Of a stretch of 64,000 bases of DNA, positions 8,050-39,271 are shown in pieces. Source of the DNA: Dendrobates tinctorius (taxonomy: Eukaryota); the NCBI RefSeq assembly GCF_039654945.1, contig NW_027361763.1, positions 7,006,001 through 7,070,000 of the forward strand. Reading direction: 5' to 3'. The translations under genes were made by a program, and so were the position numbers. The stretch's first letter is position 1. The number at the start of each line of letters is the position of its first letter. The notes beneath the pieces are model-generated. The model made no database searches and was not told the origin of the DNA. It saw only the letters and a program-made list of their open reading frames with translations.

Positions 8050-11000
8050 TTTTTACCAAGGGTAACAGGAGAAATTGGACTGCAAAAGTTATTGTGCAAT
8101 TTGTCCTGAGTACGCTGATACCTGATATGTGGGGGGGAACGACTGTTTCGGCGCATGGCAGAGCTCAGAATGGAAGGAGCGCCGTTTGACTTTTTCAATG
8201 CAAAATTGGCTGGAATTCAGATCGGACCCCATGTCACATTTGGAGAGTCCCTGATGTACCTAAATAGTGCAAACCCCCTACAAGTGACCCCATTTTGGAA
8301 AATAGACCCCCCAAGGAACTTATCTAGATATGTGGTGAGAACTTTGAACCCACAAGGGCTTTACAGAAGTTTCTAACGTACAGCGGTACAATTAAAAAAT
8401 CATTTTTTCCACAAAAATGATCTTTTCACACCAATTTTTATTTTCCCAAGGGTAACCGGACCCTAAAAGTTATTGTGCAATTTGTCCTGAGTACACTGAT
8501 AGCCCACATGTGGGGGTAAACCACTATTTGGGCGCATGGCAGAGCTCGGAAGGGAAGCAGCGCCATTTGACGTTTTTGGCTGGAATTGAGATCGGACATC
8601 ATGTCGCGATTGGAAAACCCCTGATGTACCAAAACAGTGGAAACCCCCCACAAATGACACCATTTTGGAAACTAGACCCCCTAAGGAACTTATCTAGATG
8701 TGTGGTGAGAACTTTGAACCCCCAAGGGCTTCACAGAAGTTTATAACATACAGCCGTACAATTAAAAAATCATATTTTTTCCACAAAAATGAACTATTCA
8801 CCCTCAATTCTTATTTTTCCAAGGGTAACAGGACCCTAAAAGTTATTGTGCAATTTGTCCTGAGTACGCTGATACCCCACATGTGGGAGTAAACCGCTAT
8901 TTGGGCGCATGGCAGAGCTCGGAAGGGAAGCAGCGCCATTTGACGTTTTTGGCTGGAATTGAGATCGGACACCATGTCGCGATTGGAAAACCCCTGATGT
9001 ACCAAAACAGTGGAAACCCCCCACAAATGACACCATTTTGGAAACTAGACCCCCTAAAGAACTTATCTAGATGTGTGGTGAGAACTTTGAACCCCCAAGG
9101 GCTTCACAGAAGTTTATAACGCCCGGGCGTGAAAATAAAAAATTCGTTTTTTTTCCACAAACATGATCTTTTATTCACCATTTTTTTTATTTTCCCAAGG
9201 GTACCAGGAGAAATTGGACCCCAAATGTTATTGTCCAATTTGTCCTGAGTATGCTGATACCCCATATGTGGGAGAAAACTACTGTATGGGCACACGACGG
9301 GGCTCGGAAGGAAAGTAGTGACGTTTTGGAATGCAGACTTTGATGGAATGATCTGCGGGTGTCATGTTGCCTTTGGAGAGCCCCTAATGTACCTAAACAG
9401 TGGAAACCCCCCCAAATGACCCCATTTTGAAAACTAGACCCCCTAAGGAACTTATCTAGATGTGAGGTGAACACTTTGGACCCCCAAGGGCTTCACAGAA
9501 GTTTATAATGCCAGGGCATGAAAATAAAAAAATCGTATTTTTTCCACAAGCATGATCAATTAGTCCCCAATTTTTTTATTTTCCCAAGGGTAACAGGAGA
9601 AATTGAACCCCAATAGTTGTGGTCCAATTTGTCCTGAGTACGCTGACACCCCATATGTGGGAGAAAACTACTGTATGAACACACGTCAGGGCTCGGAAGG
9701 GAAGCAGTGACGTTTTGGAATGCAGACTTTGATGGAATGGTCTGCGGGTGTCATGTTGCCTTTGGAGAGCCCCTAATGTACCTAAACAGTGGAAACCCAC
9801 ACAAATGACCCCATTTTGGAAACTAGACCCCCTAAGGAACTTATCTAGATGTGAGGTGAACACTTTGGACCCCCAAGGGCTTCACAGAAGTTTATAATGC
9901 CAGGGCATGAAAATAAAAAAATCGTATTTTTTCCACAAGCATGATCAATTAGTCCCCAATTTTTTTATTTTCCCAAGGGTAACAGGAGAAATTGAACCCC
10001 AAAAGTTGTTGTCCAATTTGTCCTGAGTATGCTGATACCCCATATGTGGGAGAAAACTACTGTATGGGCACACGTCGGGGCTCGGAAGGGAAGTAGTGAC
10101 GTTTTGGAATGCAGACTTTGATGGAATGGTCTGCAGGTGTCATGTTGCCTTTGGAGAGCCCCTAATGTACCTAAACAGTGGAAACCCCCCACAAATGACC
10201 CCATTTTGAAAATTAGACCCCCTAAGGAACTTAGCTAGATGTGAGGTGAACACTTTGAACCCCCAAGGGCTTCACAGAAGTTTATAATGCCAGGGCATAA
10301 AAATAAAAAAATCGTATTTTTTCCACAAACATGATCAATTAGTCCCCAATTTTTTTATTTTCCCAAGGGTAACAGGAGAAATTGAACCCCAATAGTTGTG
10401 GTCCAATTTGTCCTGAGTACGCTGACACCCCATATGTGGGAGAAAACTACTGTATGGACACACGTCAGGGCTCGGAAGGGAAGCAGTGACGTTTTGGAAT
10501 GCAGACTTTGATGGAATGGTCTGCGGGTGTCATGTTGCCTTTGGAGAGCCCCTAATGTACCTAAACAGTGGAAACCCGCACAAATGACCCCATTTTGGAA
10601 ACTAGACCCCCTAAGGAACTTATCTAGATGTGTAGTGAGCACTTTGAACTCCCAAGGGCTTCACAGAAGTTTATAATGCCCGGGCATGAAAATAAAAAAA
10701 TCGTATTTTTTCCACAAACATGATCAATTAGTCCCCAATTTTTTTATTTTCCCAAGGGCAACAGGAGAAATTGAACCCCAAAAGTTGTTGTCCAATTTGT
10801 CCTGAGTACGCTGACGCCCCATATGTGGGAGAAAACTACTGTATGGACACACGTCGGGGCTCGGAAGGGAAGTAGTGACGTTTTGGAATGCAGACTTTGA
10901 GGGAATGTTCTGCGGGTGTCATCTTGCCTTTGGAGAGCCCCTAATGTACCTAAACAGTGGAAACCCCCCACAAATGACCCCATTTTGGAAACTAGACCCC

Positions 11001-11760
11001 CTAAAGAACTTATCTAGATGTGTGGTGAGCACTTTGAACCCCCAAGGGCTTCACAGAAGTTTATAATGCCAGGGCATGAAAATAAAAAAATCGTATTTTT
11101 TCCACAAACATGATCAATTAGTCCCCAATTTTTTCATTTTCCCAAGGGTAACAGGAGAAATTGGACCCCAAAAGTTGTTGTCCAATTTGTCCTGAGTACG
11201 CTAACACCCCATATGTGGGAGAAAACTACTGTATGGACACACGTGGGGGCTCGGAAGGGAAGTAGTGACGTTTTGGAATGTAGACTTTGATGGAATGGTC
11301 TGCGGGTGTCATGTGCGTTTGGAGAGCCCCTGATGTACCTAAACTATTGAAACTCCCCACAAGTGACCCCATTTTGGACACTAGACCCCCCACGGAACTT
11401 ATCTAGATGTGTGGTGAGCACTTTGAACCCCCAAGTGCTTCACAGAAGTTTATAACGCTCGGACGTGAAAATAAAAAAAACATTTTTTTCCACAAAAATG
11501 ATATTTTTGCCCCCAATTTTTTATTTTCCTAAGGGTAACAGGAGAAATTGGACCCCAAAAATTGTTTTGCAATTTGTCCTGAGTAGGCTGATACCCTACA
11601 TGTGGGGTTAAAACACTGTTTGGGCGCATGGCAGAGCTTGGAAGGGAAGGAGCACCATTTGATTTTTTCAACTCAGAATTGGCTGGAATTGAGATCAGAT
11701 GCCATGTTGCATTTGGAGAGCCCCTGATGTGCCCAAACAGTGGAAAGCCCCAATTCTAAT
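8050..11760. repeat. Tandem array inside the piggyBac, ~10 copies of a 373-390-bp unit in two subtypes
   Basis: Recurring TTTTCCCAAGGGTAAC...AATTTGTCCTGAGTACGCTGA. Repeated ORF ends at 8438/8811 (373 apart) and 9187/9576/9965/10355/10744 (389-390 apart). Confidence 0.95.
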
Positions 11761-11782: not shown

Positions 11783-11919
11783 CCCTAACCCTAAGCTCAG
11801 CCCTAATCCTAACCCTAACCCTAGCCCTAACTCTAGCCCTAACCCTACCCTAGCCCTAACCCTAGCCCTAACCCTAACCCTAGCCCTGGACCTAACCCTA
11901 GCCCTAACCCTAACCCTAA
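11783..11919 (+). repeat. Telomere-like (CCCTAA/CCCTAG)n tract inside the piggyBac
   Basis: About 22 hexamers of CCCTAA interspersed with CCCTAG variants. Confidence 0.9.
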
Positions 11920-15049: not shown

Positions 15050-17064
15050 GGGACTCCACCTCCTTTTGGGCTACCACCCCGGTTTGGGCCACCGCCCCCT
15101 TCCGGGATATCCCCATGTCCGTTATACCGGTCTTCTCAGACCACAGTTCACACAACACAGTTTATGTCTTTTAACAATACCACACAAGTCCTTGCTGGCA
15201 CACCACAGCTCCTGCTGTCACCGATCACCGACACCACCAGCTGCTGTTCACACACAGCAGCTGGTGTCCTCTTCGTAACCCCGCCGAGTTACAGGAAGCT
15301 GCTTGTCCTCTTTGTAAAACCGCCGAGTTACAGGAAGCTGCTTGTCACCTTCTTGACTCCCACTGAGCCACCGCAGGCTGAGTTGAGAAATGAAGAAAAA
15401 AAAACACACCACAAAAAAACTCACGTGTCCTGTCTGTGTGCTATTCGGGATGTACCGTCTCCACCTGAGACCGTCCAACAAACAGGGCAGACCGGGTGAT
15501 ATTCAGGGAGCCGACCCTCCTCCCAGGGTTTCCCAACACACCGGCTACACCAACACACCACACAAAACTCACGTGTCCTGTCTGTGTGTTATTCATGACG
15601 TTCCATCTCCACCTGAGACCGTCCAACACACAGGGCGCACCGGGTGCTATTCAGGGAGCAGCCCTCCTCCCAGGGTTCCCCAACACACCGGCCTCACCAG
15701 GTCCAGGGGCTTAGCGGGTGCTCTTCAGGACATCCATCTCCTCCTGAGACAGCCCAACACTCATGCCTCACCAGGTCCAAGGTCATACCACGTGCTCCAG
15801 GGATCTAATTCTTCTCCCAGAACCTCCCAACACTGACCCTCCAGGACCTTGCTCACTGAACCCTCCAGGTACACAGTCTTTTCCCACTGACCAAGGTCAG
15901 TACCACACGAACACCAGTCCGTTACCTGTGTCAGCCACACAGGTCCTCGGGTACCTCTTCTCCACAGAGGCACCCTATCAATCACCAGTCTTTCTCACTG
16001 ACTCCGGTCAGTACAACATGGTTTTCATGACCGTCACCTGCTGGTCGCGTAGGTTCTCGGACCCCTCTACTGCAGAGTTATCCTATAAGTCTCTTTCTCC
16101 TGGGGAAACGGCCGCACAGGGCTCACCGATCCGGAGAGTGCCTTACTCACTAGGCCGCCCCACGGTTCCAGAACCACAGACGGGCAGTGGCTTCCCCAAC
16201 CGTCAGCCTTCCTGGCTCAGTGTCGCCCTTAGCAATCAACTTTGCAGTCCTCTTCTGTTGCTCCCAGCAACAAGGCTACAACATTGCCCATAGCTTTCTC
16301 CACCAAATGTGAGGTAGCGCTGTCATCTAAGTAGGGGATACTCGCTCAGCGGCCACAAAACCAGATCCGGCACAGGGTTTTCATAAACCATAACACAGTC
16401 AATGAGGTTTATTCAGCAGCATAAAACCATAGAAGCAACATACAGTTCTCATACCAGCATAGCGTCCCTTATAGCTTCACTCTGGTTATCCTGTTATCAC
16501 AAAGGTTAAGCAAATGTCCAGCATACAGGCTCTTCAGCCTCAGCGTTATCTCACCCACGTCAGGGTCACTCATGGTTCCTTCACCATCATGCAGCAGACG
16601 TCCAGGCACTTGCAGCCATTAACACAGCGTTCACTTGCTGTCAGAAGGCAGCCCCATCTCACTTAGATGGGACCTTCCACACTGGACCAACCAGGTCCCA
16701 GCATTCACCACCTGTGACCTACCCTGGCCACATTATATGGTTCATAGCCACGCCCACCCGGTCACATGACTCTGACCTCATCACAGGTCCTTCAAGCACT
16801 TACACACTCTTTACAACAGTGCTTTAAACACACCTCCTGGGTGGGTTTGTAGGTAACCAGGCCACCCATCTCTCTAGCTACCTGGAGACTTCTCCCTTAC
16901 ACATTGAAACAACACCTCAGCAATATCATTGCTGAACAAGACATAAGTCTCCATCCCAAAGCCACCCACTTTGGGATACATAATGGCCATTCCGTATTCT
17001 GCCATTCATCCTTTCTCCTGGGACATCCACACAGCGCCCCCTAGCAGACTCAGTGGTTACTACA
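15050..17064 (-). mobile_element. Non-coding LTR retroelement: 5' LTR 16308-17064 plus ~1.25 kb internal region; 3' LTR missing
   Basis: LTR bounded by TGT...ACA. On the minus strand it is followed by TT-TGGTGGAGAAAG (PBS-like) and ends near a purine run AAAAGGAGGTGGAG (15054-15067, PPT-like). No gag/pol motifs. Confidence 0.65.
16294..16305 (-). promoter_or_regulatory. Primer-binding site, probably tRNA-Ala
   Basis: TGGTGGAGA, 2 nt after the LTR end, is complementary to the ...UCUCCACCA 3' end of tRNA-Ala. Confidence 0.6.
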
Positions 17065-17093
17065 CCACAACACCACAATATATATATATATAT

Positions 17094-17752
17094 TTTAAGG
17101 TAGCGCTGTCATTCAAGGTTGGGGACACTCGCTTGACAGCCAAATAATCAGATCCGGCACGGGTTTTCCATAAAACAATAACAGTCCATGCGGTTTATTC
17201 AGGCATCATAAACCATGACCAGCAACATAAAGTTCATATAAACAGCATAGTGTCCATGACAGAGCTCCACTCTGTTAATTAAGCCTGTACTAACACAGGT
17301 TATGCAATGTCCATGCACACAGGCACTCAGGAAGGCTTGCACATCTTCCAGCGAGACCTTCCAAATGGACCAACCGGGTACCAGCATTCTCCCATGTGAC
17401 CTACCCTGGCCACCTTATATGGTCCGTAGCCACGCCCACCGGGTCACATGGCTATGACCTCATCACAGGTCCTACAAGCATTCATACATTCGTTACTATG
17501 GCGTTCTAGCCACACCCCTGGGTGGAATTGTAGGTAGCTGGTTCCGCCCGTCTCACCAGCTACCTGGAACGCTCTCCCTGACACAGTGTAACAGAAGCTC
17601 AGCAGTACCTCTGCTGACCAACACACATGTTCAAGCTTCCATCCCAAGGCCACCCACCTTGAGATACATAACGGTCATTCAATATCTTGCCACTCATCCT
17701 CTCTCCTGGGACACCCACACAGGGCCCCCTAGCGGACACAGTGGTCACTACA
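17094..17752 (-). mobile_element. Second LTR of the same family
   Basis: Colinear with 16308-17064 (AGGTAGCGCTGTCAT...CAGATCCGGCAC...GACCTACCCTGGCCAC...CAGTGGTCACTACA); flanked by (TA)n. Confidence 0.75.
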
Positions 17753-17753
17753 C

Positions 17754-17756
<3 letters not shown>

Positions 17757-17809
<53 letters not shown>

Positions 17810-17830
17810 GTTTATATATATATATATATA
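17757..17830. repeat. (TA)n microsatellite
   Basis: Seen directly; further (TA)n at 17078-17093 and 30436-30470. Confidence 0.95.
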
Positions 17831-17933
17831 AATAGTGTTGAGCATTCCGATACTTAGTTCCGATACTTTTTTCATATCGAATACCGGAATCGGAAGTTCC
17901 CATAATGCTAGGAGCCCGCTCGATTTGATTCAG

Positions 17934-18044
17934 CCAATGGGGATCCTCAGAAGTGTGGGCATATCCTGTTAGGCATGTAGGCATGTTAACTACTGGCATG
18001 GCTGTGATTGGCTGCTGAAATGATGTCATGATGCACTATAAAAA
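17934..18044 (+). promoter_or_regulatory. Putative Pol II promoter of the hAT transposase
   Basis: CCAAT (17934), inverted CCAAT (ATTGG, 18007) and TATAAAAA (18037), pointing toward the transposase. Motif evidence only. Confidence 0.5.
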
Positions 18045-19050
18045 GCGCTGCAGCCACCATTTCTGGTCACTCTGCTGTGAATTCAGTTAGGGACAGGCTG
18101 CTGTTGAAGACTGTGAGGGACAGTTAGAAATAGCGATTCTAAAAACAATATTGTGCTTTATCCAGGCTACATAAACCACCACTGTAGCTTGTTTTTCCCT
18201 AGCAGCGCTGTTTTCACAGCTGTCTGCAAGGGCTGTGTGAGTGCAGACCCACGCTGTGTAGTGTGTCCTGCAGGCACGTCTGCTTGTAGGCCGGCCAGCG
18301 TGTGTCTCTGCCTCATACACATTTTTCTTTTATTGCTGCTTTTTTTTTCTCCTGTATAGTGTGCTTCCATACGTATCCATATACGTTGGTTGCAAACACT
18401 AAAGGAGTGGACAGCGGAGCCTTTCAGCAGCCTTTCAGTGCTATAGCCCATTTCTCTGCACTGTTTTTGGCTGTCTGATAGGTCTCTCTGTGTGTGAGTG
18501 CAGCTCACGTTGCAGTGAGTTCTACAGCCACCGCTAGCTGTAGTCCGCTCAGCGTGCGTCACTGCCTCATACATAGTCCTTTTTTTGCAGCAAATTTAGC
18601 CAGATTTTTGCTCCTATATTAGTGTGCTTCCAACCGCATCCATTGTCATTGGTTGGTTGCAAACACTATATAGGATTAGATAGAGGAGCCTTTTTGCTGG
18701 CTTGTGCCCTTCAGGGCCAGCCAGGCTAGTATCACCCTATTTTTTGGAGCCTCATCAATTGCATTGTAGGTTAGCTTCCTGCATTGTAATCGCTCCAAAA
18801 AGTTTGTGATACTATAGCTTTCAAACTTTGGTCACATCCTTTCCTTTCCCCCCACCCAAAAAAAAAGGAAATAAAGTTCACCAAACACTCCACTTTACAG
18901 TTGTCTAGGCCACATTAGATCATATTAAAGTGTAGTACACACACTCTTAGCCAAATTAGTGTTTCTTATACTGGTTAGCAGGTGTTCAGGAATAAGAACA
19001 CTAAGCCACCACTTTTTTACTTTTCTGCCTATCTTTATCAGTCTACCAAG

Positions 19051-22000
19051 ATGAAGAAGGCAGGGAGTAAGGCACGTGGTCGTGGCCGTGGAGTTTCAGC
19101 AGGGAGAGGACGGGGGGATTCAGCAGGGAGAGGACGTGGGGATTCGGTATCTGCTGTGGCCACCAGTGACCCGGCATCCCCCACTTTTACCAGGCAACAG
19201 TCCTTCATGCGCAGCTTTGTAGGACCTCGCCGTACCCCACTGCTGCGTGACGAACAAATTGAAGCCGTTGTCGGATGGATGGCAGCTAACGCATCCACTT
19301 CAATGACTTCCGCATCCTCCCAAGGCCAGAGCACTGAAGAGCAACCATCTGTCTCTTCACCACCTGCCAAATTGCCCAGGCAGTCTGAGAGCCCTGGACA
19401 GGAGCCATCTCAATCTTTACTTCTGTTCTCAGAATCTGTTGGCTTGGAAAGAGGTGGCCAGCCAAGCAGCATTCTAGAGCATGAAGAAGAGGGAGTATGC
19501 AGTGATGTGCAACTGCTTTGTCCCTCTGAATCTGAAGAGGCGGGTGGGCCAGTGCCTATGGTCAGCACACCTCAGTATGCATCAGATGATGATGAGACTC
19601 AGTTGCCAATTTCTGGTGCGTACTGTGCTGGCGAGACAACCCAGGACCAGCCGGTGCTTGAAGAGGGGAGTGGAGATGATGAGGTCCTTGACCCGTCATG
19701 GCGTCAGCCACAGGAAGGTGGTGGGAGCAGCTCTGAGGAAGAGATTCCCCGAACGGCCAAAAGAGGAGGGAGAGGGCGGGGGCAGACTTGGTTGCCTGTA
19801 GCCTCCACTTTGGCACCCATGAGGAGAAATCCTCTTCCAAAACACAAAACGGGCGCTCCCAGGACTTGCAGTGCGTGGTCTTTTTTTGACACAGTTGCAG
19901 ATGACATTTGCTTTGTCAAATGCAAGCTGTGTCATCAGAAAGTGAAACGAGACAAAAAATGTGACCAACCTCAATACCACAAATATGTGGAAACATGTGC
20001 GTACCAAGCACGAGGTGGAGTTACACAGACACACTGAAGATGTAGGCCAACCTTCAGCAGCACCTACCACCTCTTCAGCTCGTGTTGGGGCCTCTTCCTC
20101 CAGCTCACACAGAGCTGGTTCGGCTTCCTCACTGGAACGCCATGGAAGAACCACTGCCACTGTTGTCCAGAGACCCAGTGAAATTCCACCCACTGAACCA
20201 CGTTCGCAGTCATCAGCACCCTCCCAGGCCACTCACCAGCAATCGGTAGCACAGGCATGGGAGAAAAAGCGGCCATACTCGGCAAACCATCCCCGAGCAC
20301 TGGCTCTGAATGCCGGCATTGCCAAACTACTGGCCCTTGAGATGCTGTCATTCAGGCTGGTGGAGACTGACACATTCCGGAACTTTATGGCAGTTCCACA
20401 ATACAATGTGCCCAGCTGCTTTTATTTCAGCAGGCAAGCTGTCCCTGCCCTGCAAAAGCATGTGGAGGGAAAAATTAAAAGTGCGCTACTAAATGCCGTC
20501 AGTAGCAAGGTCCACCTGACCACCGATGCGTGGACCAGTAGCCATGGACAGGGACGATACCTTTCCCTCACTGCCCATTGGGTCAATGTTGTGGAGCCGG
20601 GTACAGATCTGGAGAGTGGCTCTGTACGTATTCTGCCAACTCCAAGGATTGCAGGAATGCAGTCTGTACATATTGAGTCCTCCTCCTACTCTAGTTCCTC
20701 GGAATCAGCACTGCGTGAGCCTGTTAGGCCAGATATGAGCACAGGTGTGGCCAAACGTCAACAGGCCATCCTTAAATTAATTTCTTTGGGGAATCGGAGC
20801 CACACAGCACCGGAGCTCTGGAATGCCATCAAGCAGGAGAGCGATGTGTGGTTTGTGCTAGCGAATCTCCAGCCAGGTTTGGTAGTGAGTGACAATGGCC
20901 AAAATCTAGTGGCAGCTCTGGGCCTAGGCAACCTCACTCACATACCATGTCTGGCACACGTGCTCAATTTGGTCGTGCAGAGCTTTCTGAGGGACTATCC
21001 GGATCTTGATGCACTGCTGCACAAGGTTCGCCTAGAGTGTGCTCACTTGCGGCGTTCCAGCATGGCAAGATCGCGCATTGCATCTCTGCAACGCCGATTC
21101 CGCCTGCCAGAACATCGCATCATATGTGACCTCCCCACCAGGTGGAATTCAACGTTACATATGTTGGAGCGGTTGTGTGAGCAGCAGGCAGCAGTAATGG
21201 AGTACCAGCTGCATCAGGCGCAAACAAGTCGCACTGTGCGCCGGACACACTTCACCACCACTGAGTGGGCCACTATGAGGGACATCTGCCAAGTTTTGCG
21301 TGCCTTCGATGACTCCACGCGGATGGCCAGTGCAGATGATGCACTAATCAGCATGACTGTCCCCCTCATCTGTCTGCTTCAAAAAACCTTACAAGCACTA
21401 AGTGAAGAGGTTTTTGAAGAGGTCGAGGATGAGCAGTCAGAAATGCCATCTGTTTCTGGCAAGTCTGCGCAACGTGCTTCCACACAAAGGCCAAGGCAGG
21501 GGACACTTAGTGAGGAGGATGACGAGGAGTCAATGGAGGAGGAGGAACACATCTCTCCAGAGGAGGGAGGTACACAAGGCTCTAGTAGTCAGTGTGTACA
21601 GCGAGGGTGGGGTGATGCTGAGCAGGCAGAGATGCTGCCTCAAGCTGGGGACAGCGTTTCCGGTCCAGTTGGCAGTCTGCAGCACATGGTTGATTTCATG
21701 CTGCAGTGCTTGTTAAATGACCGCCGCATCGCCAACATTCTCCACACGGCTGATTATTGGGTGTACACCCTCCTAGATCCTCGCTACCAGGACAACTTAC
21801 AAAGCCTCATACCACAGTTGAACCGGGAGCGAAAAATGCGGGAGTACCAAGAAACACTTGTGCAGGCCATCATGTTCTCCATTCCCCCCACAAGTGTTGC
21901 TGGTAGTGCTTTTCAAAGCAGCCATGTGGGTAGAGGCAGTGGAGGAAGCTCTGCACAAAGAGGTAGCAGAGGCAGTGCCGCAGGACAAGGCAAGGCCAGT

Positions 22001-22384
22001 ATGGCCCAAATGTGGAAAAGTTTTGTGGGACCGCCACAAACGGCTACACCATCACAGATGGCTCCAGTCAGCAGGAGGCAACGTTTCCGTCAGATGGTGA
22101 CAGACTACTTGTCGTGCCCTGTTAGTGTTCTCCCAGACGGCTCTTCCCCGTTCAAGTATTGGGACTCTAAGCTGGATACATGGCCAGAGCTTAGCCAGTA
22201 TGCATTGGAGGTGCTGGCTTGCCCTGCTGCCAGTGTATTATCGGAACGTGTCTTTAGTGCTGCAGGTGGTGTGGTAACAGACCGTCGCACGCGACTATCC
22301 GCCGATAATGTTGACCGGCTTACTTTTGTGAAAATGAACAAGGCCTGGATCTCACCTGAATTTGCCAGTCCTCTTCCAGAATAA
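19051..22384 (+). pseudogene. hAT transposase (ZBED4/ZBED6-like: BED finger, DDE core, dimerisation domain), 1110 aa if one frameshift is repaired
   Basis: BED finger SAWSFF...CKLC...NLNTTNMWKHVRTKH is split by one extra A in the A6 run at 19954-19959. Intact motifs HLTTDAW (D), VSDNG (D), CLAH (CxxH), TRWNS and SERVFS (E); N-terminal RG repeats. Confidence 0.92.
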
Positions 22385-22432
22385 ATAATTGGCTGGCAAC
22401 AGGATCCAGGTCTCCTGTTGTGTTCATGTTTC
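22380..22432 (+). terminator. Putative polyadenylation signal overlapping the transposase stop codon
   Basis: AATAAA at 22380-22385 includes the TAA stop; GT-rich TGTTGTGTTCATGTTT follows about 30 nt downstream. Confidence 0.45.
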
Positions 22433-22439
22433 TATGACC

Positions 22440-25400
22440 TGAACTTTATTTCCTGGGCTACAGCAACGCCCGTTGTTGATCAGAAGTGCTGTCCGCACAG
22501 ACAAAACACTCGCTCATGTGTAAGTGGGGTTCGGTAACGTCAGCTGATCCCCTGCTGTGTGTACGGCAAACTCTCCTGCTGCCTACAACTTCTGACTACC
22601 TCTGATTTAATATGTTCTCTGATTTGCCCTCTGTCTCCACTCTGTTTTGAGTATTTCCTCCGGCCTACAACACCGCCTCTTTCTGCTCTCAAGTGCCGTC
22701 TGTACAATCCACACTTGATCCTGTGGTACCTGGGTCCTGTAACATCTGCTCATCTCCAGAGTTGAGCACGGCAATGTCTCCTACTTTGTCTACATTCCCA
22801 CTACTTGTAGTGGAAATGTGGACAGAGCAGGAGACATTGCCTGACTCACCTCTAGGGAGAAGCTGCTGTTACAGAACCCCAGTAACACAGGAACAAGTGT
22901 GGGTTGTGCAGACAGCATTTCAGAGCAGCAACTGACGTGGTTGGAAGCCAGTGGAAATACTCGAAACAGAGTGGAGACAGAGGCCTAATTGGATTACGTT
23001 GACAGTTAGTAGTAGTCTAGAAACAATCGCAAACTGCCACCAATTAGGCCTCGGCCTACTACCTGATTTTCCCTGGGCTCCGACACCGCCAGTTGGTGCT
23101 CAGAAGTGCTGTCCGCACAGACAAAACACTCGATCATGTGTAAGTGGGGTTCGGTAACGTCAGCTGATCCCCTGCTGTGTGTATGGCAAAGTGTCCTGCT
23201 CCCTCCACAGTCAAACAACCTCAGATTTACACCTGGCTCCAAGTAGGCCTCGGCCTACTACCTCATTTTCCCTGGGCTCCGACAACGCCAGTTGGTGCTC
23301 GGAAGTGCTGTCCGCACAGACAAAACACTCGCTCATGTGTAAGTGGGGTTCGGTAACGTCAGCTGATCCCCTGCTGTGTGGAGGGCAAAGTGTCCTGCTC
23401 CCTCCAAAGTCAAAATACCTCAGCTTTACACCGGGCTCCTAGTAGGCCTCGGCCTGCACCCTGGTTCTCCCTGGGCTCCAACAACGCTAGTTGGTGCTCG
23501 GAAGTGCTGTCCACACAGAAAAACACACTCGTTCATGTGAAAGTGGGGTTCAGTAACGTCAGCTGCTCCCCTGCTGTGTGGAGGGCAAACTGCTGCTGCC
23601 TCCAAATTGTAACTACTTCAGATTTAAACATTCTCTGATTTGGCCTCTGTCTCCACTCTGTCTCTAGTATTTCCCCTAACCTCCAACACCGCCAGTTCCT
23701 GCTCACAGTCGCCGTCCACGAATTCCACACGTGTTCCTGTGTTACTGGGGTTCTGTAACATCAGCAGATCCCCCAATATGTGTCCGCCACTGTCTCCTGC
23801 GCTGTCCACCTTCCCACTGCAAGCGGTGGGAAGGTGGACAGAGCAGGAGACAGTGGCAGACACACATCAGGGGATCTGCTGACATTACAGAATCCCAGTA
23901 ACACAGCAACACGTGTGGATTGGGCAGACGGCTACTGTACGCATAAACTGGCGGTGTTGGTAGTCACGTGAAATCCTGGAAACAGAGTGGAGACAGATGC
24001 CTAATTGGAGCACGTTGACAGTCTGTTGTAGCCTACAAACACTGTTAAACTGCCACCAAGTAGGCCTCGGCCTGCACCCTGGTTCTCCCTGGGCTCCAAC
24101 AATGCTAGTTGGTGCTCAGAAGTGCTGTCCACACAGAAAAACACACTCGGTCATGTGAAAGTGGGGGTCAGTAACGTCAGCTGATCCCCTGCTGTGTGGA
24201 GGGCAAAGTGTCCTGCTCCCTCCAAAGTCAAAATACCTCTGCTTTACACCTCGCACCTAGTAGGCCTCGGCCTGCACCATGATTGTCCCTGGGTTCCAAC
24301 AATGCTAGTTGGTGCTCGGAAGTGCTGTCCACACAGAAAAACACACTCGTTCATGTGAAAGTGGGGTCAGTAACGTCAGCTGCTCCCCTGCTGTGTGGAG
24401 GGCAAACTGCTGCTGCCTCCAAATTGTAACTACTTCAGATTTAAACATTCTCTGATTTGGCCTCTGTCTCCACTCTGTCTCTAGTATTTCCCCTGACCTC
24501 CAACACCGCCAGTTCCTGCTCACAGTTGCCGTCCACGCATTCCACACGTGTTCCTGTGCTACTGGGGTTCTGTTACGTCAGCAGATCCCCCAATATGTGT
24601 CCGCCACTGTCTCCTGCGCTGTCCACCTTCCCACTGCAAGCGGTGGGAATGTGGACAGAGCAGGAGACAGTGGCAGACACACATCAGGGGATCTGCTGAC
24701 ATTACAGAATCCCAGTAACACAGCAACACGTGTGGATTGGGCAGACGGCTACTGTACGCATAAACTGGCGGTGTTGGTAGTCACGTGAAATCCTGGAAAC
24801 AGAGTGGAGACAGATGCCTAATTGGAGCACGTTGACAGTCTGTTGTAGCCTACAAACAATCTAAAACTGCCACCAAGTAGGCCTCGGCCTGCACCCTGGT
24901 TCTCCCTGGGCTCCAACAATGCTAGTTGGTGCTCAGAAGTGCTGTCCACACAGAAAAACACACTCGTTCATGTGAAAGTGGGGGTCAGTAACGTCAGCTG
25001 ATCCCCTGCTGTGTGGAGGGCAAAGTGTCCTGCTTCCTCCAAAGTCAAAATACCTCAGCTTTACACCTGGCTCCTAGTAGGCCTCGGCCTGCACCCTGGT
25101 TCTCCCTGGGCTCCAACAACGCTAGTTGGTGCTTGGAAGTGCTGTCCACACAGAAAAATACACTCGTTCATGTGAAAGTGGGGTTCAGTAACGTCAGCTG
25201 ATCCCCTGCTGTGTGGAGGGCAAACTGCTACTGCCTCCAAATTCAAACAACGTCTTATCTTAAACTGCCTCCAAGTAGGCCTCAGCCTACAAAATGACTA
25301 TCCCTGGGCTCCAACATCGTCAGTTGTTGCTCGGAAGTGCCGTCCATACAGAAAAACACACTCGTTCATGTGAAAGTGGGGTTCAGTAACGTCAGCTGCT

Positions 25401-27492
25401 CCCCTGCTATGTGGAGGGCAAACTGCTGCTGCCTCCAAATTGTAACTACTTCAGATTTAAACATTCTCTGATTTGGCCTCTGTCTCCACTCTGTCTCTAG
25501 TATTTCCCCTGACCTCCAACACCGCCAGTTCCTGCTCACAGTTGCCGTCCACGCATTCCACACGTGTTCCTGTGTTACTGGGGTTCTGTTACGTCAGCAG
25601 ATCCCCCAATGTGTGTCCGCCACTGTCTCCTGCGCTGTCCACCTTCCCACTGCAAGTGGTGGGAATGTGGACAGAGCAGGAGACATTGGCAGACAAACAT
25701 CAGGGGATCTGCTGACATTACAGAACACCAGTAACACAGGAACACGTGTGGATTGGGCAGACGGCTACTGTACGCTTAAACTGGCGGTGTTTGTAGTCAC
25801 GTGAAATCCTGGAAACAGAGTGGAGATAGATGCCTAATTGGAGCACGTTGACAGTCTGTTGTAGCCTACAAACAATCAAAAACTGCCACCAAGTAGGCCT
25901 CGGCCTGCACCCTGGTTCTCCCTGGGCTCCAACAACGCTAGTTGGTGCTCGGAAGTGCTGTCCACACAGAAAAACACACTCGTTCATGTGAAAGTGGGGT
26001 TCGGTAACGTCAGCTGATCCCCTGCTGTGTGGAGGGCAAAGTGTCCTGCTCCCTCCCAAGTCAAAATACCTCTGCTTTAAACCTGGCTCCTTGTAGGCCT
26101 CGGCCTGCACCCTGGTTCTCCCTGGGCTCCAACAACGCTAGTTGGTGCTCGGAAGTGCTGTCCACACAGAAAAACACACTCGTTCATGTGAAAGTGGAGT
26201 TCAGTAACGTCAGCTGATCCCCTGCTGTGTGGAGGGCAAACTGCTACTGCCTCCAAATTCAAACAACGTCTTATCTTAAACTGCCTCCAAGTAGGCCTCA
26301 GCCTACAAAATGACTATCCCTGGGCTCCAACATCGTCAGTTGTTGCTCGGAAGTGCCGTCCATACAGAAAAACACACTCGTTCATGTGAAAGTGGGGTTC
26401 AGTAACGTCAGCTGCTCCCCTGCTGTGTGGAGCGCAAACTGCTGCTGCCTCCAAATTGTAACTACTTCAGATTTAAACATTCTCTGATTTGGCCTCTGTC
26501 TCCACTCTGTCTCTAGTATTTCCCCTGACCTCCAACACCGCCAGTTCCTGCTCACAGTTGCCGTCCACGCATTCCACATGTGTTCCTGTGTTACTGGGGT
26601 TCTGTTACGTCAGCAGATCCCCCAATGTGTGTCCGCCACTGTCTCCTGCGCTGTCCACCTTCCCACTGCAAGTGGTGGGAATGTGGACAGAGCAGGAGAC
26701 ATTGGCAGACAAACATCAGGGGATCTGCTGACATTACAGAACACCAGTAACACAGGAACACGTGTGGATTGGGCAGACGGCTACTGTACGCATAAACTGG
26801 TGGTGTTGGTAGTCACGTGAAATCCTGGAAACAGAGTGGAGACAGATGCCTAATTGGAGCACGTTGACAGTCTGTTGTAGCCTACAAACAATCTAAAACT
26901 GCCGCCAAGTAGGCCTCGGTCTGCACCCTGGTTCTCCCTGGGCTCCAACAACGCTAGTTGGTGCTCGGAAGTGCTGTCCACACAGAAAAACACACTCGTT
27001 CATGTGAAAGTGGGGGTCAGTAACGTCAGCTGATCCCCTGCTGTGTGGAGGGCAAAGTGTCCTGCTCCTTCCAAAGTCAAAATACCTCTGCTTTACACCT
27101 CGCTCCTAGTAGGCCTCGGCCTGCACCATGATTGTCCCTGGGTTCCAACAATGCTAGTTGGTGCTCGGAAGTGCTGTCCACACAGAAAAACACACTCGTT
27201 CATGTGAAAGTGGGGGTCAGTAACGTCAGCTGCTCCCCTGCTGTGTGGAGGGCAAACTGCTGCTGCCTCCAAATTGTAACTACTTCAGATTTAAACATTC
27301 TCTGATTTGGCCTCTGTCTCCACTCTGTCTCTAGTATTTCCCCTGACCTCCAACACCGCCAGTTCCTGCTCACAGTAGCCGTCCACGCATTCCACACATG
27401 TTCCTGTGTTACTGGGGTTCTGTAACATCAGCAGATCCCCCAATATGTGTCCGCCACTGTCTCCTGCGCTGTCCACCTTCCCACTGCAAGCG
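22440..27492 (+). repeat. hAT cargo array 1: 199-bp units with ~360-bp fold-back cassettes, higher-order period 817 or 1016 bp
   Basis: GTAGGCCTCGGCCT recurs every 199-200 bp. Palindromic cassettes start at about 22620, 23640, 24457, 25473, 26489 and 27307 (last one half). Confidence 0.95.
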
Positions 27493-29315
27493 GGGTTCCA
27501 GCACGCCTGCTGTTTCCGGGTAGTGTCAAGGTCACTATGCCACCAATCCGTTGTCCTGTCGTCTTGCGGCCGGGTTAGCCGACTCTACGGTGCCTGCAGT
27601 TTAGGTGACTCCTATGTGGGCTGCGGGAACTGGCACTGAAGGCTGGATCCGTAGTGCCAATGGGACATGGACCCCCTGTAGGACTGTGGGTTTCGGTAAC
27701 TGCGGCCGGCTTGCGGCCTGGCTACTTTGCTTTCAATGGGTACCTTCTGCTACCCACCCGGGTTCCAGCACTGTCTGCTGGTTCTCGCCAGAGCCTTTGG
27801 CCTAGGTGCCTCCATCTCGGTATCCGAGGTCCAGCACCGTCAGCTGGTCCTTGGTAGTGCTTTCTAGCACAGGTACCTCCTGCCTAGTAACCGTGGTCCA
27901 GCACCGTCAGCTGTTCCTCGGTAGTGCCATTGGCTCTTGTAGCTTTTGATACCCATCTGGGTTCCAGCACCGTCAGCTGGTTCTCGGCAGTGTCTTTGGC
28001 ACGGGGACTCCCTGTTGCCCAGCCTGGTTCCAGCACGCCTGCTGTTTCCGGGTAGTGTCAAGGTCACTATGTCACCAATCCGTTGTCCTGTCGTCTTGCA
28101 GCTGGGTTAGCCGACTCTACGGTGCCTGCAGTTTAGGTGACTCCTATGTGGGCTGCGGGAACTGGCACTGAAGGCTGGATCTGTAGTGCCAATGGGACAT
28201 GGACCCCGTGTAGGACTGTGGGTTTCGGTAACTGCGGCCGGCTTGCGGCCTGGCTACTTTGCTTTCAATGGGTACCTTCTGCTACCCACCCGGGTTCCAA
28301 CACTGTCTGCTGGTTCTCACTAGAGCCTTTGGCCTAGGTGCCTCCATCTCGGTATCCGAGGTCCAGCACCGTCAGCTGGTCCTTGGTAGTGCTTTTTAGC
28401 ACAGGTACCTTCTGCTTAGTAACCGTGGTCCAGCACCGTCAGTTGGTCCTCGGTAGTGCCATTGGCTCTTGTTCCTTCTGCTACCCATCCGGGTGCCAGC
28501 ACTGTCTGCTGGTTCTCGCCACAGCCTTTGGCCTAGGTGCCTCCATCTCGGTATCCGAGGTCCAGCACCGTCAGCTGGTCCTTGGTAGTGCTTTTTAGCA
28601 CAGGTACCTTCTGCTTAGTAACCGTGGTCCAGCACCGTCAGTTGGTCCTCGGTAGTGCCATAGGCTCTTGTTCCTTCTGCTACCCATCCGGGTTCCAGCA
28701 CTGTCTGCTGGTTCTCGCCACAGCCTTTGGCCTAGGTGCCTCCATCTCGGTATCCGAGGTCCAGCACCGTCAGCTGGTCCTTGGTAGTGCTTTTTAGCAC
28801 AGGTACCTTCTGCTTAGTAACCGTGGTCCAGCATCGTCAGTTGGTCCTCGGTAGTGCCATTGGCTCTTGTTCCTTCTGCTACCCATCCGGGTGCCAGCAC
28901 TGTCTGCTGGTTCTCGCCACAGCCTTTGGCCTAGGTGCCTCCATCTCGGTATCCGAGGTCCAGCACCGTCAGCTGGTCCTTGGTAGTGTTTTTTAGCACA
29001 GGTACCTTCTGCTTAGTAACCGTGGTCCAGCACCATCAGTTGGTCCTCGGTAGTGCCATTGGCTCTTGTTCCTTCTGCTACCCATCTGGGTGCCAGCACT
29101 GTCTGCTGGTTCTCGCCACAGCCTTTGGCCTAGGTGCCTCCATCTCGGTATCCGAGGTCCAGCACCGTCAGCTGGTCCTTGGTAGTGGTTTCTAGCACAG
29201 GTACCTCCTGCATAGTAACCGGGGTCCAGCACCGTCAGCTGTTCCTCAGTAGTGCCATTGGCTATTGTTCCTTCTGCTGCCACTACGGGTTCCAGTACTG
29301 TCAGCTGGTTCTCGC
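27493..29315 (+). repeat. hAT cargo array 2: ~66-bp units in a 199-bp higher-order repeat, plus a 532-bp duplication
   Basis: CCAGCACCGTCAG(C/T)TGG about every 66 bp. Repeated ORF starts at 28338/28537/28736/28935/29134 (199 apart) and 27605/28137 (532 apart). Confidence 0.95.
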
Positions 29316-29317
29316 AT

Positions 29318-29880
29318 GAAGACAACCACCAAGATACAGAACAAAAGACAGAAGAACAAGATGCAGAAGAAGCAAAAGCAGAAGAACAGAAAGAAGAAGA
29401 ACATTAAGCATAAGACAAAAAATCAGCATAGAAGAAATCAAAATTATAAGCAGAAGAAGACTAAGCAGTAAATGGGGGTGAGTCCGTTCCTCCTCGTGGT
29501 GCCCCTGGAAAATGCCTGCTGCTGCAGGCCAAACTGAACGCGGACAAATCCTGTTGTAAATCTTTTGTGACAGGCAGAACGTAAGGTGTAATCTTATAAC
29601 TTTTATAGATAAGTACTACAGGAATGCCTGTCGCCATAAGAAAATGAAGAAAAAGAAGAATAGGAAGAAGATGAAGAAATAGCATATGAAAATTAATAAT
29701 AGCTGAATAAGAAGAATATGAAGAATGGAAAAAAAAAATAATGGGAAGAAGGTGAAGAAGAAGAAGATGAATAAGGTGAAGAAAAAGTTGATGAAAAAAA
29801 TGCTACTGCTGCGGATCATGAAGGAGAAAGTGTGGGAGAAGTACAAAAGTAGGTGAAGAGCATGGAAGTTGTGAAACATA
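29318..29880 (+). repeat. A/GAA-rich low-complexity tracts (29318-29472, 29636-29880) around a GC-richer island
   Basis: AAGAAG/AAGCAG runs on both sides of 29474-29635. Confidence 0.85.
29474..29545 (+). ncRNA. Candidate HDV-like self-cleaving ribozyme
   Basis: P1 GGGGGUG/UGCCCCU with G1-U wobble; P2 GUCCGU/GCGGAC; P3 CC/GG; L3 UCCUCGU; P1.1 CC/GG; P4 GCCUGC/GCAGGC; J4/2 CUGAA. Core CCUCCUCGUGGU versus HDV antigenomic CCUCCUCGCGGU. Confidence 0.7.
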
Positions 29881-30240
29881 CATATCTGACTAAATATAAA
29901 AAAGTTAACATAGTCAATATCTTTTTAACTCCAAACGTCTTGAAAAAAAAAATTGGAATTAATGCTATGCCATGTGATTTGAATAAACCATTATGCTTTT
30001 AATGTCTCCTCCACCTCCCACAATACATTCTACATGATTCTTATTTGTTTTCAATTATGTAGAATTAGCCAACAAGGAAATAAAGGGCTTTTTTTAATTC
30101 CGATACCGGAAGTCCCATTGACTTGAATGGGACTTCCGGTATCGGAATCGGCGATACCCGATATTTTTTTCGTATCGGGCGATACCATCCGATACAATAT
30201 TTTTGGGTATCGAACGGTATCGCTCAACACTATATATAAA

Positions 30241-30434
30241 ATAAAGGGAACACTTAAACAACAAAATCTAACTCCAAATCAGTCAAGCTTATGTGAAATC
30301 AACACTGATTGTGATTCAATTTCTCCTGCTGTTGTGCAAATGGTGTAAACAACAGTTAGAAATGATAGGAAGGTCACTAACGTCTATGTGTCTGCTCAGT
30401 AAGAGTTTCTAGGGTTCCCTTTATTTTTTGAGCA

Positions 30435-30436
<2 letters not shown>
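30241..30436. mobile_element. Short internally deleted Tc1 derivative
   Basis: Inverted ends ATAAAGGGAAC / GTTCCCTTTATTTTTTGAGCAG followed by TA repeats; left tip missing next to the hAT insertion. Confidence 0.6.
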
Positions 30437-30470
<34 letters not shown>

Positions 30471-30473
<3 letters not shown>

Positions 30474-31626
30474 AAGGCAACGCTCATCGAGTGTATTGGG
30501 GGACACTCACTTGGCAGCGCATTCACGTCACACAGGAACACTTTCCGTTAAACAGTCTATGTGGTTTATTGAACGGTATAAACTATATAAGGCAACACAA
30601 AGAAAGCAGTCTTATATCAGATAGATTAATCCTTAATGTCCATAGTAGAGCTTCGCTCTCTCAGTCGTGTGGCCACACAGGATGTGCCATGTCCAGTAAC
30701 AGGCTCTATTGCCTCACCACAGTTATTTCCCCCTGTCCGGGATTACCTCTTAGGAGCTTCTGCTCCAGACGCCGACTCTTGGTTTCTCCCGGGGAAGCGG
30801 CTGCACTGAGCTCACCATTCCGGACAGTGCTTTATTCAATAGGCCGCCTCACAGTTCCAGAACCACAGCCAGGCAGTGGCTTCCCCAAATGCAGTCCATC
30901 ACAGACTCTGCTCACACACGTGGCCTGTCCGGGTGCTATTCAGGAATCCGACCCTTCTTCCTGGGTCTCCCAACACCAGGACCAGGGCCTCAGCGGGTGC
31001 TATTCAGGACGTCCATCCCCTCCTGAGACCGTCCAACACTCACGCCTCACCGGGTGTTATTCAGGGATCCATCCCTACTCCCATGGACTCCCAACACACC
31101 GGCCTCACCAGGTCCAAGGTCGCAGCAGGTGCTATTCAGGAAGGCAGCACACCTTCCAACACCTAGACCTTCCAGAACCTTCCACCCTGAATCATTCAAG
31201 TACACACTCTCTCCCCATGTGACCAGACCTCAGGCACCTTATATGGTCCATAGCCACACCCAGAGGTGAGGTATGAATCACATGGTTATGACTTCACTAA
31301 AGGTCTTCTTTCACACAGTCACACACACACAGGCTTTATTCTGGACATTCAGACACACGCCCCTAGGTGGGTTTGTAGGTGAATGGTCCCACCTATCTCA
31401 CCAAGTCACTTGGAAGCTGGAAGCTTTCCCTGATACACTGCAGCAAACCCTTAGCAGTACCTCTGCTGAGCAACACATGTTCCAGCTTCCATCACAAGTC
31501 ACCCACACTTGTGATACATATCAGCCATTCACAACCCTGCCAGTCAACATTTTCCCTACTACAATGAAGGAACGCCTGCATGCATGTCCCATACAGCGCC
31601 CCCTAGCTGTCACAGGGGTCACTGCA
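30471..31626 (-). mobile_element. Long (1156-bp) LTR variant related to 16308-17064
   Basis: TGTAAGG...CACTGCA termini; shares the family's terminal blocks (CAGCGCCCCCTAGC, TTATATGGTCCATAGCCAC); abuts (TA)n. Confidence 0.7.
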
Positions 31627-37732: not shown

Positions 37733-38964
37733 ATTAGTCTAATGTGTATGGGGACCTGTAGTTGCATTGTAGGAACTTGCAGTTCTTGCAACCTAAAGAT
37801 TGTTAATGGTCTGACATTTAAAGAGTTTATCCAAACTTTTAAGAGAGCTGATTGGAAGCTTCAAATGGCTGAAAATAAAATAAGTGACTAATTCATTTGC
37901 TGGTCCAAACATTTTCATTTTTTTTTTTACAATTTTATGCTCCCCTCTTTCTTAAACGTGCATGTGAAAAGATTTGGTTTCTTCATGTGGCAAGGGTTTA
38001 CAGCGTCAATATTGACTTTTAGTATTGCTACTTCCAATAAATGGCTTTACAGTTTGAGAATTTTTTCAGGATGGTAGCGGTGATGTCAGTGAGGTTACCG
38101 GGGATCATCAGCTGTGAACTCCAGTGACCTTTCTCACATCAGCACTAGAAACGGCAAGAGCAGAGCTGGTGTTTAACATGGGACAAATGGATTGTCGTTG
38201 GATAGGTGAGGAATACAGTGTTTTATTATTTTTTATTTTACATTAATAAGTGGGGAGTGTATATTTCAAATAAAGGAGTCTGTGACTGCAAAAGGAGTTT
38301 CTGGTTTGCCATCTTATATCAAGTCATGTAGTAAGGCTCCTTAAAGGAAAAATATTGATTTTTAGAATTGCTGTCTCCAATAGATGGCATTTAAATTCCC
38401 TTCCCCTTCCTCTTTTAAGTAAATATTTGATTTTTTTAGATTCCCAGACTTATAAATGGCTTGTAAATCTACTTAGGGCAACTTATATCCTAGACCCCTA
38501 CTGTCATGATCCAGTCCAGTTTGTTTTCTGCTGTCTTCTCTTTGGACTGGTCATGCAGGGGCTAATCCCCTCTGCCTCGTTCTGGAGCTGGCTGGGCTAT
38601 TTCAGTCCTCTGCAGCCTGCGGGCCAGCTTCAACTATACTGCAAGTTTCCAGGCTAGTGCAATCCTGGAAACAATCCACGCTTCGATGGAACAGGACCGC
38701 TTCACGTGGCCGCTGAATCACCAAGCCTGGAAGAGTCGGGAAATGTTCCATCGGTTTTTGGTAAAAGTTAAAAACTCACGTAGGAAGCGTCAGAGGGAGG
38801 AAATTGAGGAAAATATGAGTGGTTGTACAGAGTTGTCAAAGGGAATGTAAGTGTGATAAGATTATCGGTAACACTGTCCAAATTGCTACAAAGGTAGAAA
38901 AAAAAATTATATTGCTTATATAGCATCATTACTGCACAACCTTGCTGATTTTACACATGCTGGC

Positions 38965-39271
38965 ATACAATAGTGATAACCACCGAGCCACCATGCTGAT
39001 CATACACATACTGTGAGACAACAGTACTAACCACCGAGCCACCATGCTGACTATACACATACTGTGAGACAACAGCACTAACTACTGAGCCACCATGCTG
39101 ACTATGCACATACTGTGAGACAACAACAGTGCTAACTACTGAGCCACCATGCTGACTATACATATACTGTGAGACAACAGTGCTAACTACTGAGCCACCA
39201 TGATGACTATACACATACTTTGAGACAACAGTGCTAACCACTGAGCCACCATGATGACTATACACATACTG
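38965..39271. repeat. 51-bp minisatellite, left part
   Basis: Unit CATACTGTGAGACAACAGTGCTAACCACTGAGCCACCATGCTGACTATACA. Confidence 0.95.

Follow-up and report, generated by a model that had tools for sequence, protein, structure and literature searches.

Tandem arrays of a covarying hairpin module within a hAT transposon of Dendrobates tinctorius

The transposon and its arrays

We analysed a 64,000-nt stretch of the genome of the frog Dendrobates tinctorius (contig NW_027361763.1, positions 7,006,001 to 7,070,000), called the window below, whose own numbering is used unless another copy is named. It carries a complete hAT DNA transposon, and behind the transposase gene of this element lie two tandem arrays (22452–29315) of short repeated hairpins. 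Comparing the hairpins with one another and with copies of the transposon in a related frog suggests that they belong to a larger fold. Compensating changes, and changes that tolerate G-U, have maintained its base pairs among diverged copies, with a preference for the sense strand of the transposase. The parts of the element are:

17833–30232, + strand: complete hAT DNA transposon, 12.4 kb, with terminal inverted repeats, a target-site duplication and subterminal repeats; it contains both arrays.
19961–22384, + strand: hAT transposase open reading frame (ORF), 807 amino acids, from the ORF list, with the Pfam domain Dimer_Tnp_hAT (PF05699) at E=1.9e-14.
22452–27489, + strand: array 1, 14 units (u1) of ~199 bp, each with hairpin 1 and hairpin 2, with palindromes between units (Tandem Repeats Finder, BLAST map).
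22615–22989, 23627–24016, 24444–24833, 25460–25849 and 26476–26865, no strand assigned: five 390-bp palindromes with arms of ~190 nt.
27294–27487, + strand: sixth palindrome, reduced to its left arm; the palindrome centre is where array 1 terminates.
27490–27760, + strand: segment X, 270 bp, with a second copy at 28026–28292 (98% identity, BLAST map).
27743–29315, + strand: array 2, 199-bp units (u2) divided into three modules of 66 bp (a, b, c), each having its own hairpin (Tandem Repeats Finder, BLAST map).

The element ends in terminal inverted repeats of 11 nt (TAGTGTTGAGC / GCTCAACACTA) and is flanked by a perfect 8-bp target-site duplication, TATATAAA, at 17825–17832 and 30233–30240, in keeping with its assignment to hAT; its subterminal repeats are CGATAC/GTATCG. 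The closest relatives of the transposase, 78% and 75% identical, are from Ranitomeya variabilis, and the next (~50–52%) are from other dendrobatids. Relatives carry PF02892, PF27039 and PF05699; a BED finger and a C-terminal hAT dimerisation domain mark a hAT transposase.

The arrays consist of head-to-tail units with periods of 199, 66 and 1016 bp between the element ends, as in a transposon-internal satellite, the longest being the higher-order period of array 1 that takes in u1 units and palindromes together. Array 2 is split, ~1.3 units preceding the second copy of segment X and 5.2 units occupying 28275–29315. Copies within one class are 90–99% identical, and neither the BLAST map nor a covariance model finds array sequence elsewhere in the window. 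Each tandem unit holds short dyad symmetries of the kind seen in dyad-symmetry satellites. The palindrome arms themselves derive from u1, from which they have diverged to 72% identity, and the two arms are 82% complementary.

Two details of the palindromes may be recorded here. Their central spacer is 8 nt and the innermost 31 nt of the arms are near-perfect, with one mismatch, compared with the 82% complementarity of the arms overall; and at the junction 27487–27490 array 1 stops at the exact centre of the sixth palindrome and segment X starts, an arrangement that resembles a rearrangement breakpoint at a hairpin tip. The 199-bp unit u1 was also considered as a trimer of the 66-bp module and this was rejected, its third part having no detectable similarity to any hairpin module.

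One module with a recurring hairpin

Three examples represent the hairpins:

23471–23501, + strand: hairpin 1, with a 6-bp lower stem, U-U mismatch, 5-bp stem and 7-nt loop; -14.6 kcal/mol, z -4.1.
25180–25206, + strand: hairpin 2; -13.9 kcal/mol, z -3.4.
28356–28386, + strand: array-2 hairpin of module b; -18.4 kcal/mol, z -4.7.

A preliminary description of this DNA had quoted these and a fourth hairpin (23747–23773) as versions of one stem-loop with a lower stem, a U-U mismatch, a 5-bp stem and a 7-nt loop. All four are found exactly at these positions, and the geometry is recovered for each on the + strand at -13.5 to -18.4 kcal/mol (z -3.4 to -4.7), as against -8.3 to -13.7 kcal/mol (z -1.7 to -2.9) on the - strand. 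The layout is also borne out: a 199-bp unit holds two hairpins in array 1 and three in array 2 (3 x 66 bp). For the total, estimated earlier at about 50, we defined hairpin copies through homology and not through folding, which gives 70 homologous positions (60 direct, 10 inverted); 58 of them form the hairpin, 30 with all nine inner pairs. The covariance model that had been suggested as a check recovers exactly the 70 positions and nothing else significant in 64 kb, while a plain scan for the geometry gives 5.1 matches per kb within the region and 0.23 per kb outside it.

The stem-loop had been described as conserved by structure, not sequence, across two dissimilar arrays, which is overstated and does not hold as worded. 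The 70 positions can all be aligned ungapped, with a mean column identity of 75%, and both arrays therefore go back to a single module. Homology is clear between hairpin 1 of array 1 and modules b and c of array 2 (z ~10), and also between hairpin 2 and its palindrome-arm version (z 19). Hairpin 2 is more weakly related to modules b and c (z 4.6), and direct homology between hairpin 1 and hairpin 2 is undetectable in a pairwise comparison. The existence, geometry and copy layout of the hairpins thus stand, together with the quoted double compensatory changes (CCAAC/GUUGG vs CCAGC/GCUGG; UCAGU/GCUGA vs UCUGU/GCAGA), and the claims of conservation by structure without sequence, of dissimilar arrays and of G-U pairs confined to one strand do not. 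What had been overlooked is that the modules are sequence homologues, that hairpin 2 lies within a longer covarying helix and that the arrays contain 390-bp palindromes.

The hairpins do not match the known structured RNAs with which we compared them. Their stems of 9–11 bp fall below the ~22 bp or more of a microRNA (miRNA) or long-hairpin precursor, and no such family reaches its Rfam gathering score. A likeness to an anticodon arm had been pointed out, and the dimensions of the 5-bp stem and 7-nt loop do agree; a transfer RNA identity was rejected, there being no cloverleaf and no gene found by ARAGORN in 17000–31000, nor any Rfam match. At E<=5, Rfam gave no HDV-like or other ribozyme family at 29474–29545.

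Coordinated changes and a longer helix

In the window alone, 80.7% of cells are paired compared with 31–47% when each position is given a slid partner, and the covariation score is 0.396 compared with 0.05–0.17. We also made a comparison with a tree-aware null that starts from a paired ancestor, reuses each column's inferred substitutions on random branches and treats columns as independent. For the window this null gives 60.9 +/- 5.2% paired and a covariation of 0.183 +/- 0.048, and none of 2000 simulations reaches the observed values. When the R. variabilis copies described below are added, nine pairs have changed on both sides, vs 5.3 in shuffles (2/500) and 5.0 in the tree null (P=0.0055). 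With and without these copies the tree nulls are 61–67% paired and the observed alignments 81–82%, a level again reached in 0/2000 simulations. The added copies contain new compensations, among them CCAGC/GCTGG to CCACC/GGTGG in a module-b homologue. Several double changes (A-T to T-A, G-C to C-G and C-G to A-T) are transversions, for which CpG decay cannot account. The T..T (U-U) mismatch is preserved in nearly all lineages.

A further alignment, A3, holds an orthologous 130-nt domain in 25 copies, aligned by MAFFT from sequence only (81% identity). On it we placed a 36-pair structure that includes, besides the two hairpins, a long-range helix P, of which an example is:

25957–25969 with 26025–26037, + strand: helix P, 13 bp, enclosing a 3-bp mini-hairpin and hairpin 2 (A3 columns 38–50 with 107–119).

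This structure is 88.3% paired vs 34–44% with slid partners, and the tree-null P values are 0.0007 for pairing, 0.002 for covariation and 0.017 for pairs changed on both sides. Helix P joins segments 56 nt apart; 85.8% of its cells are paired, four of its pairs have changed on both sides (C-G/U-A/A-U, U-A/G-C), and by itself it gives P=0.007 and 0.011 against the tree null. Hairpin 2 thus appears to lie inside a 13-bp long-range helix that likewise covaries, a feature that is new here. The RNAalifold consensus recovers both hairpins, although in hairpin 2 the lower stem is one register out of place, and lacks helix P, which is therefore our own proposal, tested by counting. Taken together, coordinated changes exceed the tree-aware nulls with moderate significance (P <0.0005 to 0.017), as would be expected of maintained pairing in a structured RNA.

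Strand preference

G-U pairs had been said to arise only on the + strand. The excess is real (84 vs 14 cells in the window) but it is not absolute, and in the 130-nt domain the ratio of G-U to A-C cells is 125:13. Because the tree null reuses the observed substitution types, G-U versus A-C inside it is uninformative, and we instead compared event counts with the background spectrum. Among events inferred with the relatives, 28 go from Watson-Crick to G-U and 13 from Watson-Crick to A-C (binomial 0.028), while background substitutions in the family have a symmetric spectrum (63:66; Fisher 0.032 vs the event counts). The arrays have a G+T content of 0.50, hence no skew, and their unpaired columns are A-rich and G-poor. 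Folding of whole units compared with shuffles gives z of -3.1 and -5.4 on the + strand vs 0.0 and -3.0 on the - strand; in sliding windows, which are not independent of one another, the strand difference is clear in array 2 only. Given the G-U excess without G+T skew, the earlier claim of a + strand preference in the pairing is supported, and this is the strand sense to the transposase.

Recent singleton changes have little G-U bias, as expected if filtering takes time.

Copies in related elements

Independent copies were reached via the transposase relatives. Two of them, L001 and L003 from the R. variabilis assembly, have the same modules behind the ORF: L001 has arrays of 197 bp x3 and, inverted, 142 bp x2.3, L003 has an array of 166 bp x19.7, and a single a-b-c-a set is also present among these copies. 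Period and size thus differ among element copies, from 199 bp in the window to 197, 142 and 166 bp in these two, as is typical of satellite-like arrays, and the modules were amplified independently in different copies. The more distant hAT relatives at ~52% amino acid identity (L002 in D. tinctorius, L004 in R. variabilis) have no such hairpins within 10 kb downstream, and the module is therefore specific to the subfamily. Two degenerate DNA patterns, aimed at frog host DNA, had 0 matches in metagenome contigs, a result that is uninformative on absence.

In the R. variabilis copies, palindromic insertions adjoin the hairpin units at the equal relative place (L003 13560–14585 and 17860–18510; L001 16990–17110, 18800–18870 and 20720–21840). 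At one end these insertions have a sequence like AAGGGAACCTG and then a run of C, at the other a run of G ahead of CCCTT, and they are absent from the window copy.

A predicted poly(A) signal before the arrays

The end of the transposase ORF coincides with a predicted transcript end:

22380–22432, + strand: predicted poly(A) signal, with AATAAA (22380–22385) overlapping the stop codon, CA at ~22398–22400 and the GU-rich TGTTGTGTT at 22416–22424.

The hexamer is canonical, with CA ~15 nt and TGTTGTGTT ~30 nt downstream of it, and the signal is presumably used. It is conserved in three copies, L001 (16770–16830) and L003 (13333–13390) having ATTAAA and the same GU-rich element at the same place. 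If the signal is used at the ORF end, the first hairpin therefore lies ~50 nt beyond the predicted cleavage site.

Discussion

The observations could be explained by a module that acts as RNA. On this reading an old non-coding module, belonging to one hAT subfamily of dendrobatid frogs, has multiplied inside the element in the manner of a satellite. The module is a fold of ~120 nt rather than a bare hairpin, and in it hairpin 1 is followed by the 13-bp helix P enclosing the mini-hairpin and hairpin 2. Array 2 would be a shortened 66-bp derivative carrying hairpin 1 alone. The sense strand would fold as RNA, from read-through past the transposase poly(A) site or from separate transcription, and tandem amplification would have created a multivalent array of ~60 hairpins of identical geometry, on which one protein could assemble in many copies and so benefit the transposon. 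With comparative evidence of moderate strength, a functional fold of the sense strand, probably as RNA, is the reading that we favour among those considered, though tentatively and at somewhat less than even odds. We are more doubtful of the fuller version, according to which a sense-strand transcript of the array may serve as a multivalent platform or sponge of ~120-nt folds for a host or transposon protein, for example in escape from silencing or in germ-line localisation. The interpretation given in the preliminary description is supported in part, as far as maintained pairing and the + strand preference go. Its multivalent protein-binding array is putative, its alternative of a cAMP response element (CRE) is weak, and the likeness to an anticodon arm is limited to stem and loop sizes.

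Substantial evidence weighs against a function in RNA. The arrays start ~50 nt past the predicted 3' end of the transposase mRNA, so any array RNA would need read-through or a promoter of its own. No sequencing run catalogued as RNA contains this DNA; in two runs presumed to be RNA the contigs cover the ORF end well, array 1 patchily and the palindromes not at all, and since these contigs give no strand, ends or level we do not count them for or against transcription. (The four runs compared, all of them contigs, indicate a very high copy number in two organisms.) Rfam reports no family at its gathering score, and at E<=5 in 22380–29700 only sub-threshold miRNA-like matches on the palindrome centres, to assorted miRNA precursor families at <=53 bits compared with gathering scores of 74–100. 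Pair 8-24 is frequently broken, loop columns are conserved no better than stem columns, the loop CpG is not specially retained and decays like other CpGs, and the palindrome arms have retained hairpin 2 and lost hairpin 1 at 11 of 11 homologous positions. In sliding windows of 100 nt the arrays reach z-scores of no more than about -1.2 to -1.6, much like the 5' non-coding part of the element, and they are just mildly more structured than other non-coding parts. The statistics also have limits, as the window alone has 7 pairs changed on both sides vs 5.4 expected (77/500 shuffles, not significant), the significance of the larger set rests on few independent events and on home-made nulls rather than R-scape, the trees are rough, being built from short alignments, and part of the significance depends on a model-fitted alignment (A2).

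The pairing may alternatively belong to the DNA, in that quasi-palindromes fold in single-stranded replicating DNA or extrude as cruciforms, leading to slippage and template switching without any RNA function. This would explain the repeated tandem amplification, the 390-bp inverted duplications and an arm-to-arm correction that resembles compensation, and it draws support from several of the results above: the independent amplification of the module with different periods, the position of the arrays beyond the predicted poly(A) site, the formation of five 390-bp palindromes from u1 copies, and a sixth palindrome whose exact centre is the end of array 1. Hairpins are documented to arise and persist through template switching, which also makes multi-base compensations and can thus mimic compensation without selection (PMC8794818), and short dyad symmetries are known in satellites (PMC5889037). 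However, correction of one arm by the other yields Watson-Crick pairs; it should not favour G-U over A-C on a fixed strand in copies inserted either way, nor should it preserve the T..T mismatch in nearly all lineages, and helix P covaries even though its segments are 56 nt apart. Loop inversions and multi-base switch signatures were not seen, though no search aimed at them was made. We consider a DNA-level origin possible, and on this balance somewhat unlikely.

Neutral inheritance combined with ascertainment is a still less probable account. Here one quasi-palindromic ancestor was copied often, so that pairing is mostly inherited, decayed copies are overlooked or down-weighted and double changes arise by chance. 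The 75% column identity among positions and the 90–99% identity within a class fit this, as do the loss of hairpin 1 in the 11 arms, the insignificant number of both-side changes in the window alone and the weak G-U bias of recent singletons; CpG decay can moreover turn CG/CG stem steps into CA/TG, as seen at CCGAC to CCAAC and TCGGT to TCAGT. It is at odds with the tree-aware nulls, which already start from a paired ancestor and still fall some way short of the observed pairing, with the new compensations contributed by independent copies, with the results for the sequence-only alignment A3 (P=0.0007–0.017) and with the double changes that are transversions beyond CpG decay. Most improbable, in our view, is that the arrays are sites for a protein bound to double-stranded DNA, either a host factor (CGTCA as a CRE half-site, CAGCTG as an E-box) or the transposase at internal sites. 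Tandem arrays of factor sites are common in transposons, and in the 6.9 kb CGTCA occurs 31 times and CAGCTG 25 times, ~10 times the rate of the window. Yet the CRE alternative raised earlier is weak, for the arrays have 31 half-sites and 0 full sites (TGACGTCA), the loop variants AACGCTA, ACTGTCT and AACATCA lack CGTCA and retain the stem, and the variants GTTGG, GCAGA and GGTGG still pair although they no longer contain the E-box. CRE or E-box arrays are unlikely because pairing persists where the motif is lost. The motif CpGs decay like any other, and a sequence-specific site in double-stranded DNA would not lead one to expect covarying arms and a conserved T..T mismatch. The hairpins were likewise rejected as subterminal transposase-binding repeats, since the terminal 400 bp of the element contain CGATAC/GTATCG 10 times and the 6.9 kb of arrays 0 times.

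Satellite-like arrays born in transposons are known from frogs, namely Xstir in the Xmix miniature inverted-repeat transposable element (MITE) of Xenopus laevis and miDNA4 in a Tc1/mariner MITE of X. tropicalis (PMC9659126). Like these, the arrays described here are head-to-tail units between the terminal repeats of a frog class II element, varying in copy number and period among copies; unlike these, they are hosted by a full-length hAT element with a transposase ORF, and their unit has a multi-helix fold with covariation and strand bias. We know of no report of a covarying, strand-biased multi-helix fold for the Xstir or miDNA4 arrays. The Xlsirts are another repeat family of frogs with short units in tandem and a proposed role as RNA, and are said to be made of tandem 79–81-nt units, as described by Kloc et al. 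in 1993. In Xenopus oocytes these non-coding repeat RNAs play a structural part at the vegetal cortex (PMC4683094). Transcription, localisation and function have been demonstrated for Xlsirts, whereas the arrays studied here are known from sequence alone. MS2, PP7 and boxB hairpins are used in engineered arrays, in which many tandem copies of one stem-loop make a multivalent platform for one RNA-binding protein; the parallel is one of design only, without homology. Satellites with dyad symmetry and predicted non-B DNA (PMC5889037) share the roughly nucleosome-size repeat and the short (<10 bp) dyad symmetries, but they are centromeric, while the present arrays are dispersed in a transposon and have G-U strand-biased pairing and a long-range helix. 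Template-switch hairpins (PMC8794818) resemble them in the compensatory-looking changes of short stems and in the inverted duplications close by; from template switching one expects Watson-Crick correction and now and then an inverted loop, and not a retained T..T mismatch or a G-U excess on one strand. In the literature searched we found no description of these arrays.

Tandem arrays in DNA transposons are usually regarded as structureless by-products, and for the unit described here a strand-specific multi-helix fold is supported by comparative evidence that is moderate but repeatable. Should the fold act as RNA, a cut-and-paste transposon would, as is rarely seen, carry and amplify a structured non-coding RNA array, and it might offer a handle on how hAT elements became abundant in dendrobatid genomes. 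Low-divergence hAT sequence amounts to 255 Mb in Oophaga pumilio, and hAT elements make up 3.9% of the Dendrobates tinctorius assembly (PMC6278860, PMC11152451). If the fold acts as DNA, the locus would show cleanly, and in nature, how hairpins drive the formation of arrays and palindromes.

Other features of the element and the window

The BED zinc finger of the transposase is split over two overlapping frames, with the Cys pair in an upstream ORF (18982–20037) and the His pair in the main ORF (19961–22384), and there is therefore a frame change or an unrecognised intron near 19961–20037 in this copy. The R. variabilis protein P0001 (1296 amino acids; KRAB, BED and hAT domains; L001 1–26781) looks like a gene model that fuses a KRAB zinc-finger gene with the transposon ORF.

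With a CpG observed/expected ratio of 0.45, the window is CpG-depleted vertebrate DNA. It contains an interstitial telomere-type repeat, (CCCTAA) x23, at 11783–11919 and several tandem arrays unrelated to the transposon modules: 389 bp x9.4 at 8040–11649, 30 bp x30 at 47073–48258 and 42/116 bp at 63309–63950. Two further unrelated arrays of 51 bp, x6.5 (38939–39271) and x24 (44193–45568), have one unit in common.

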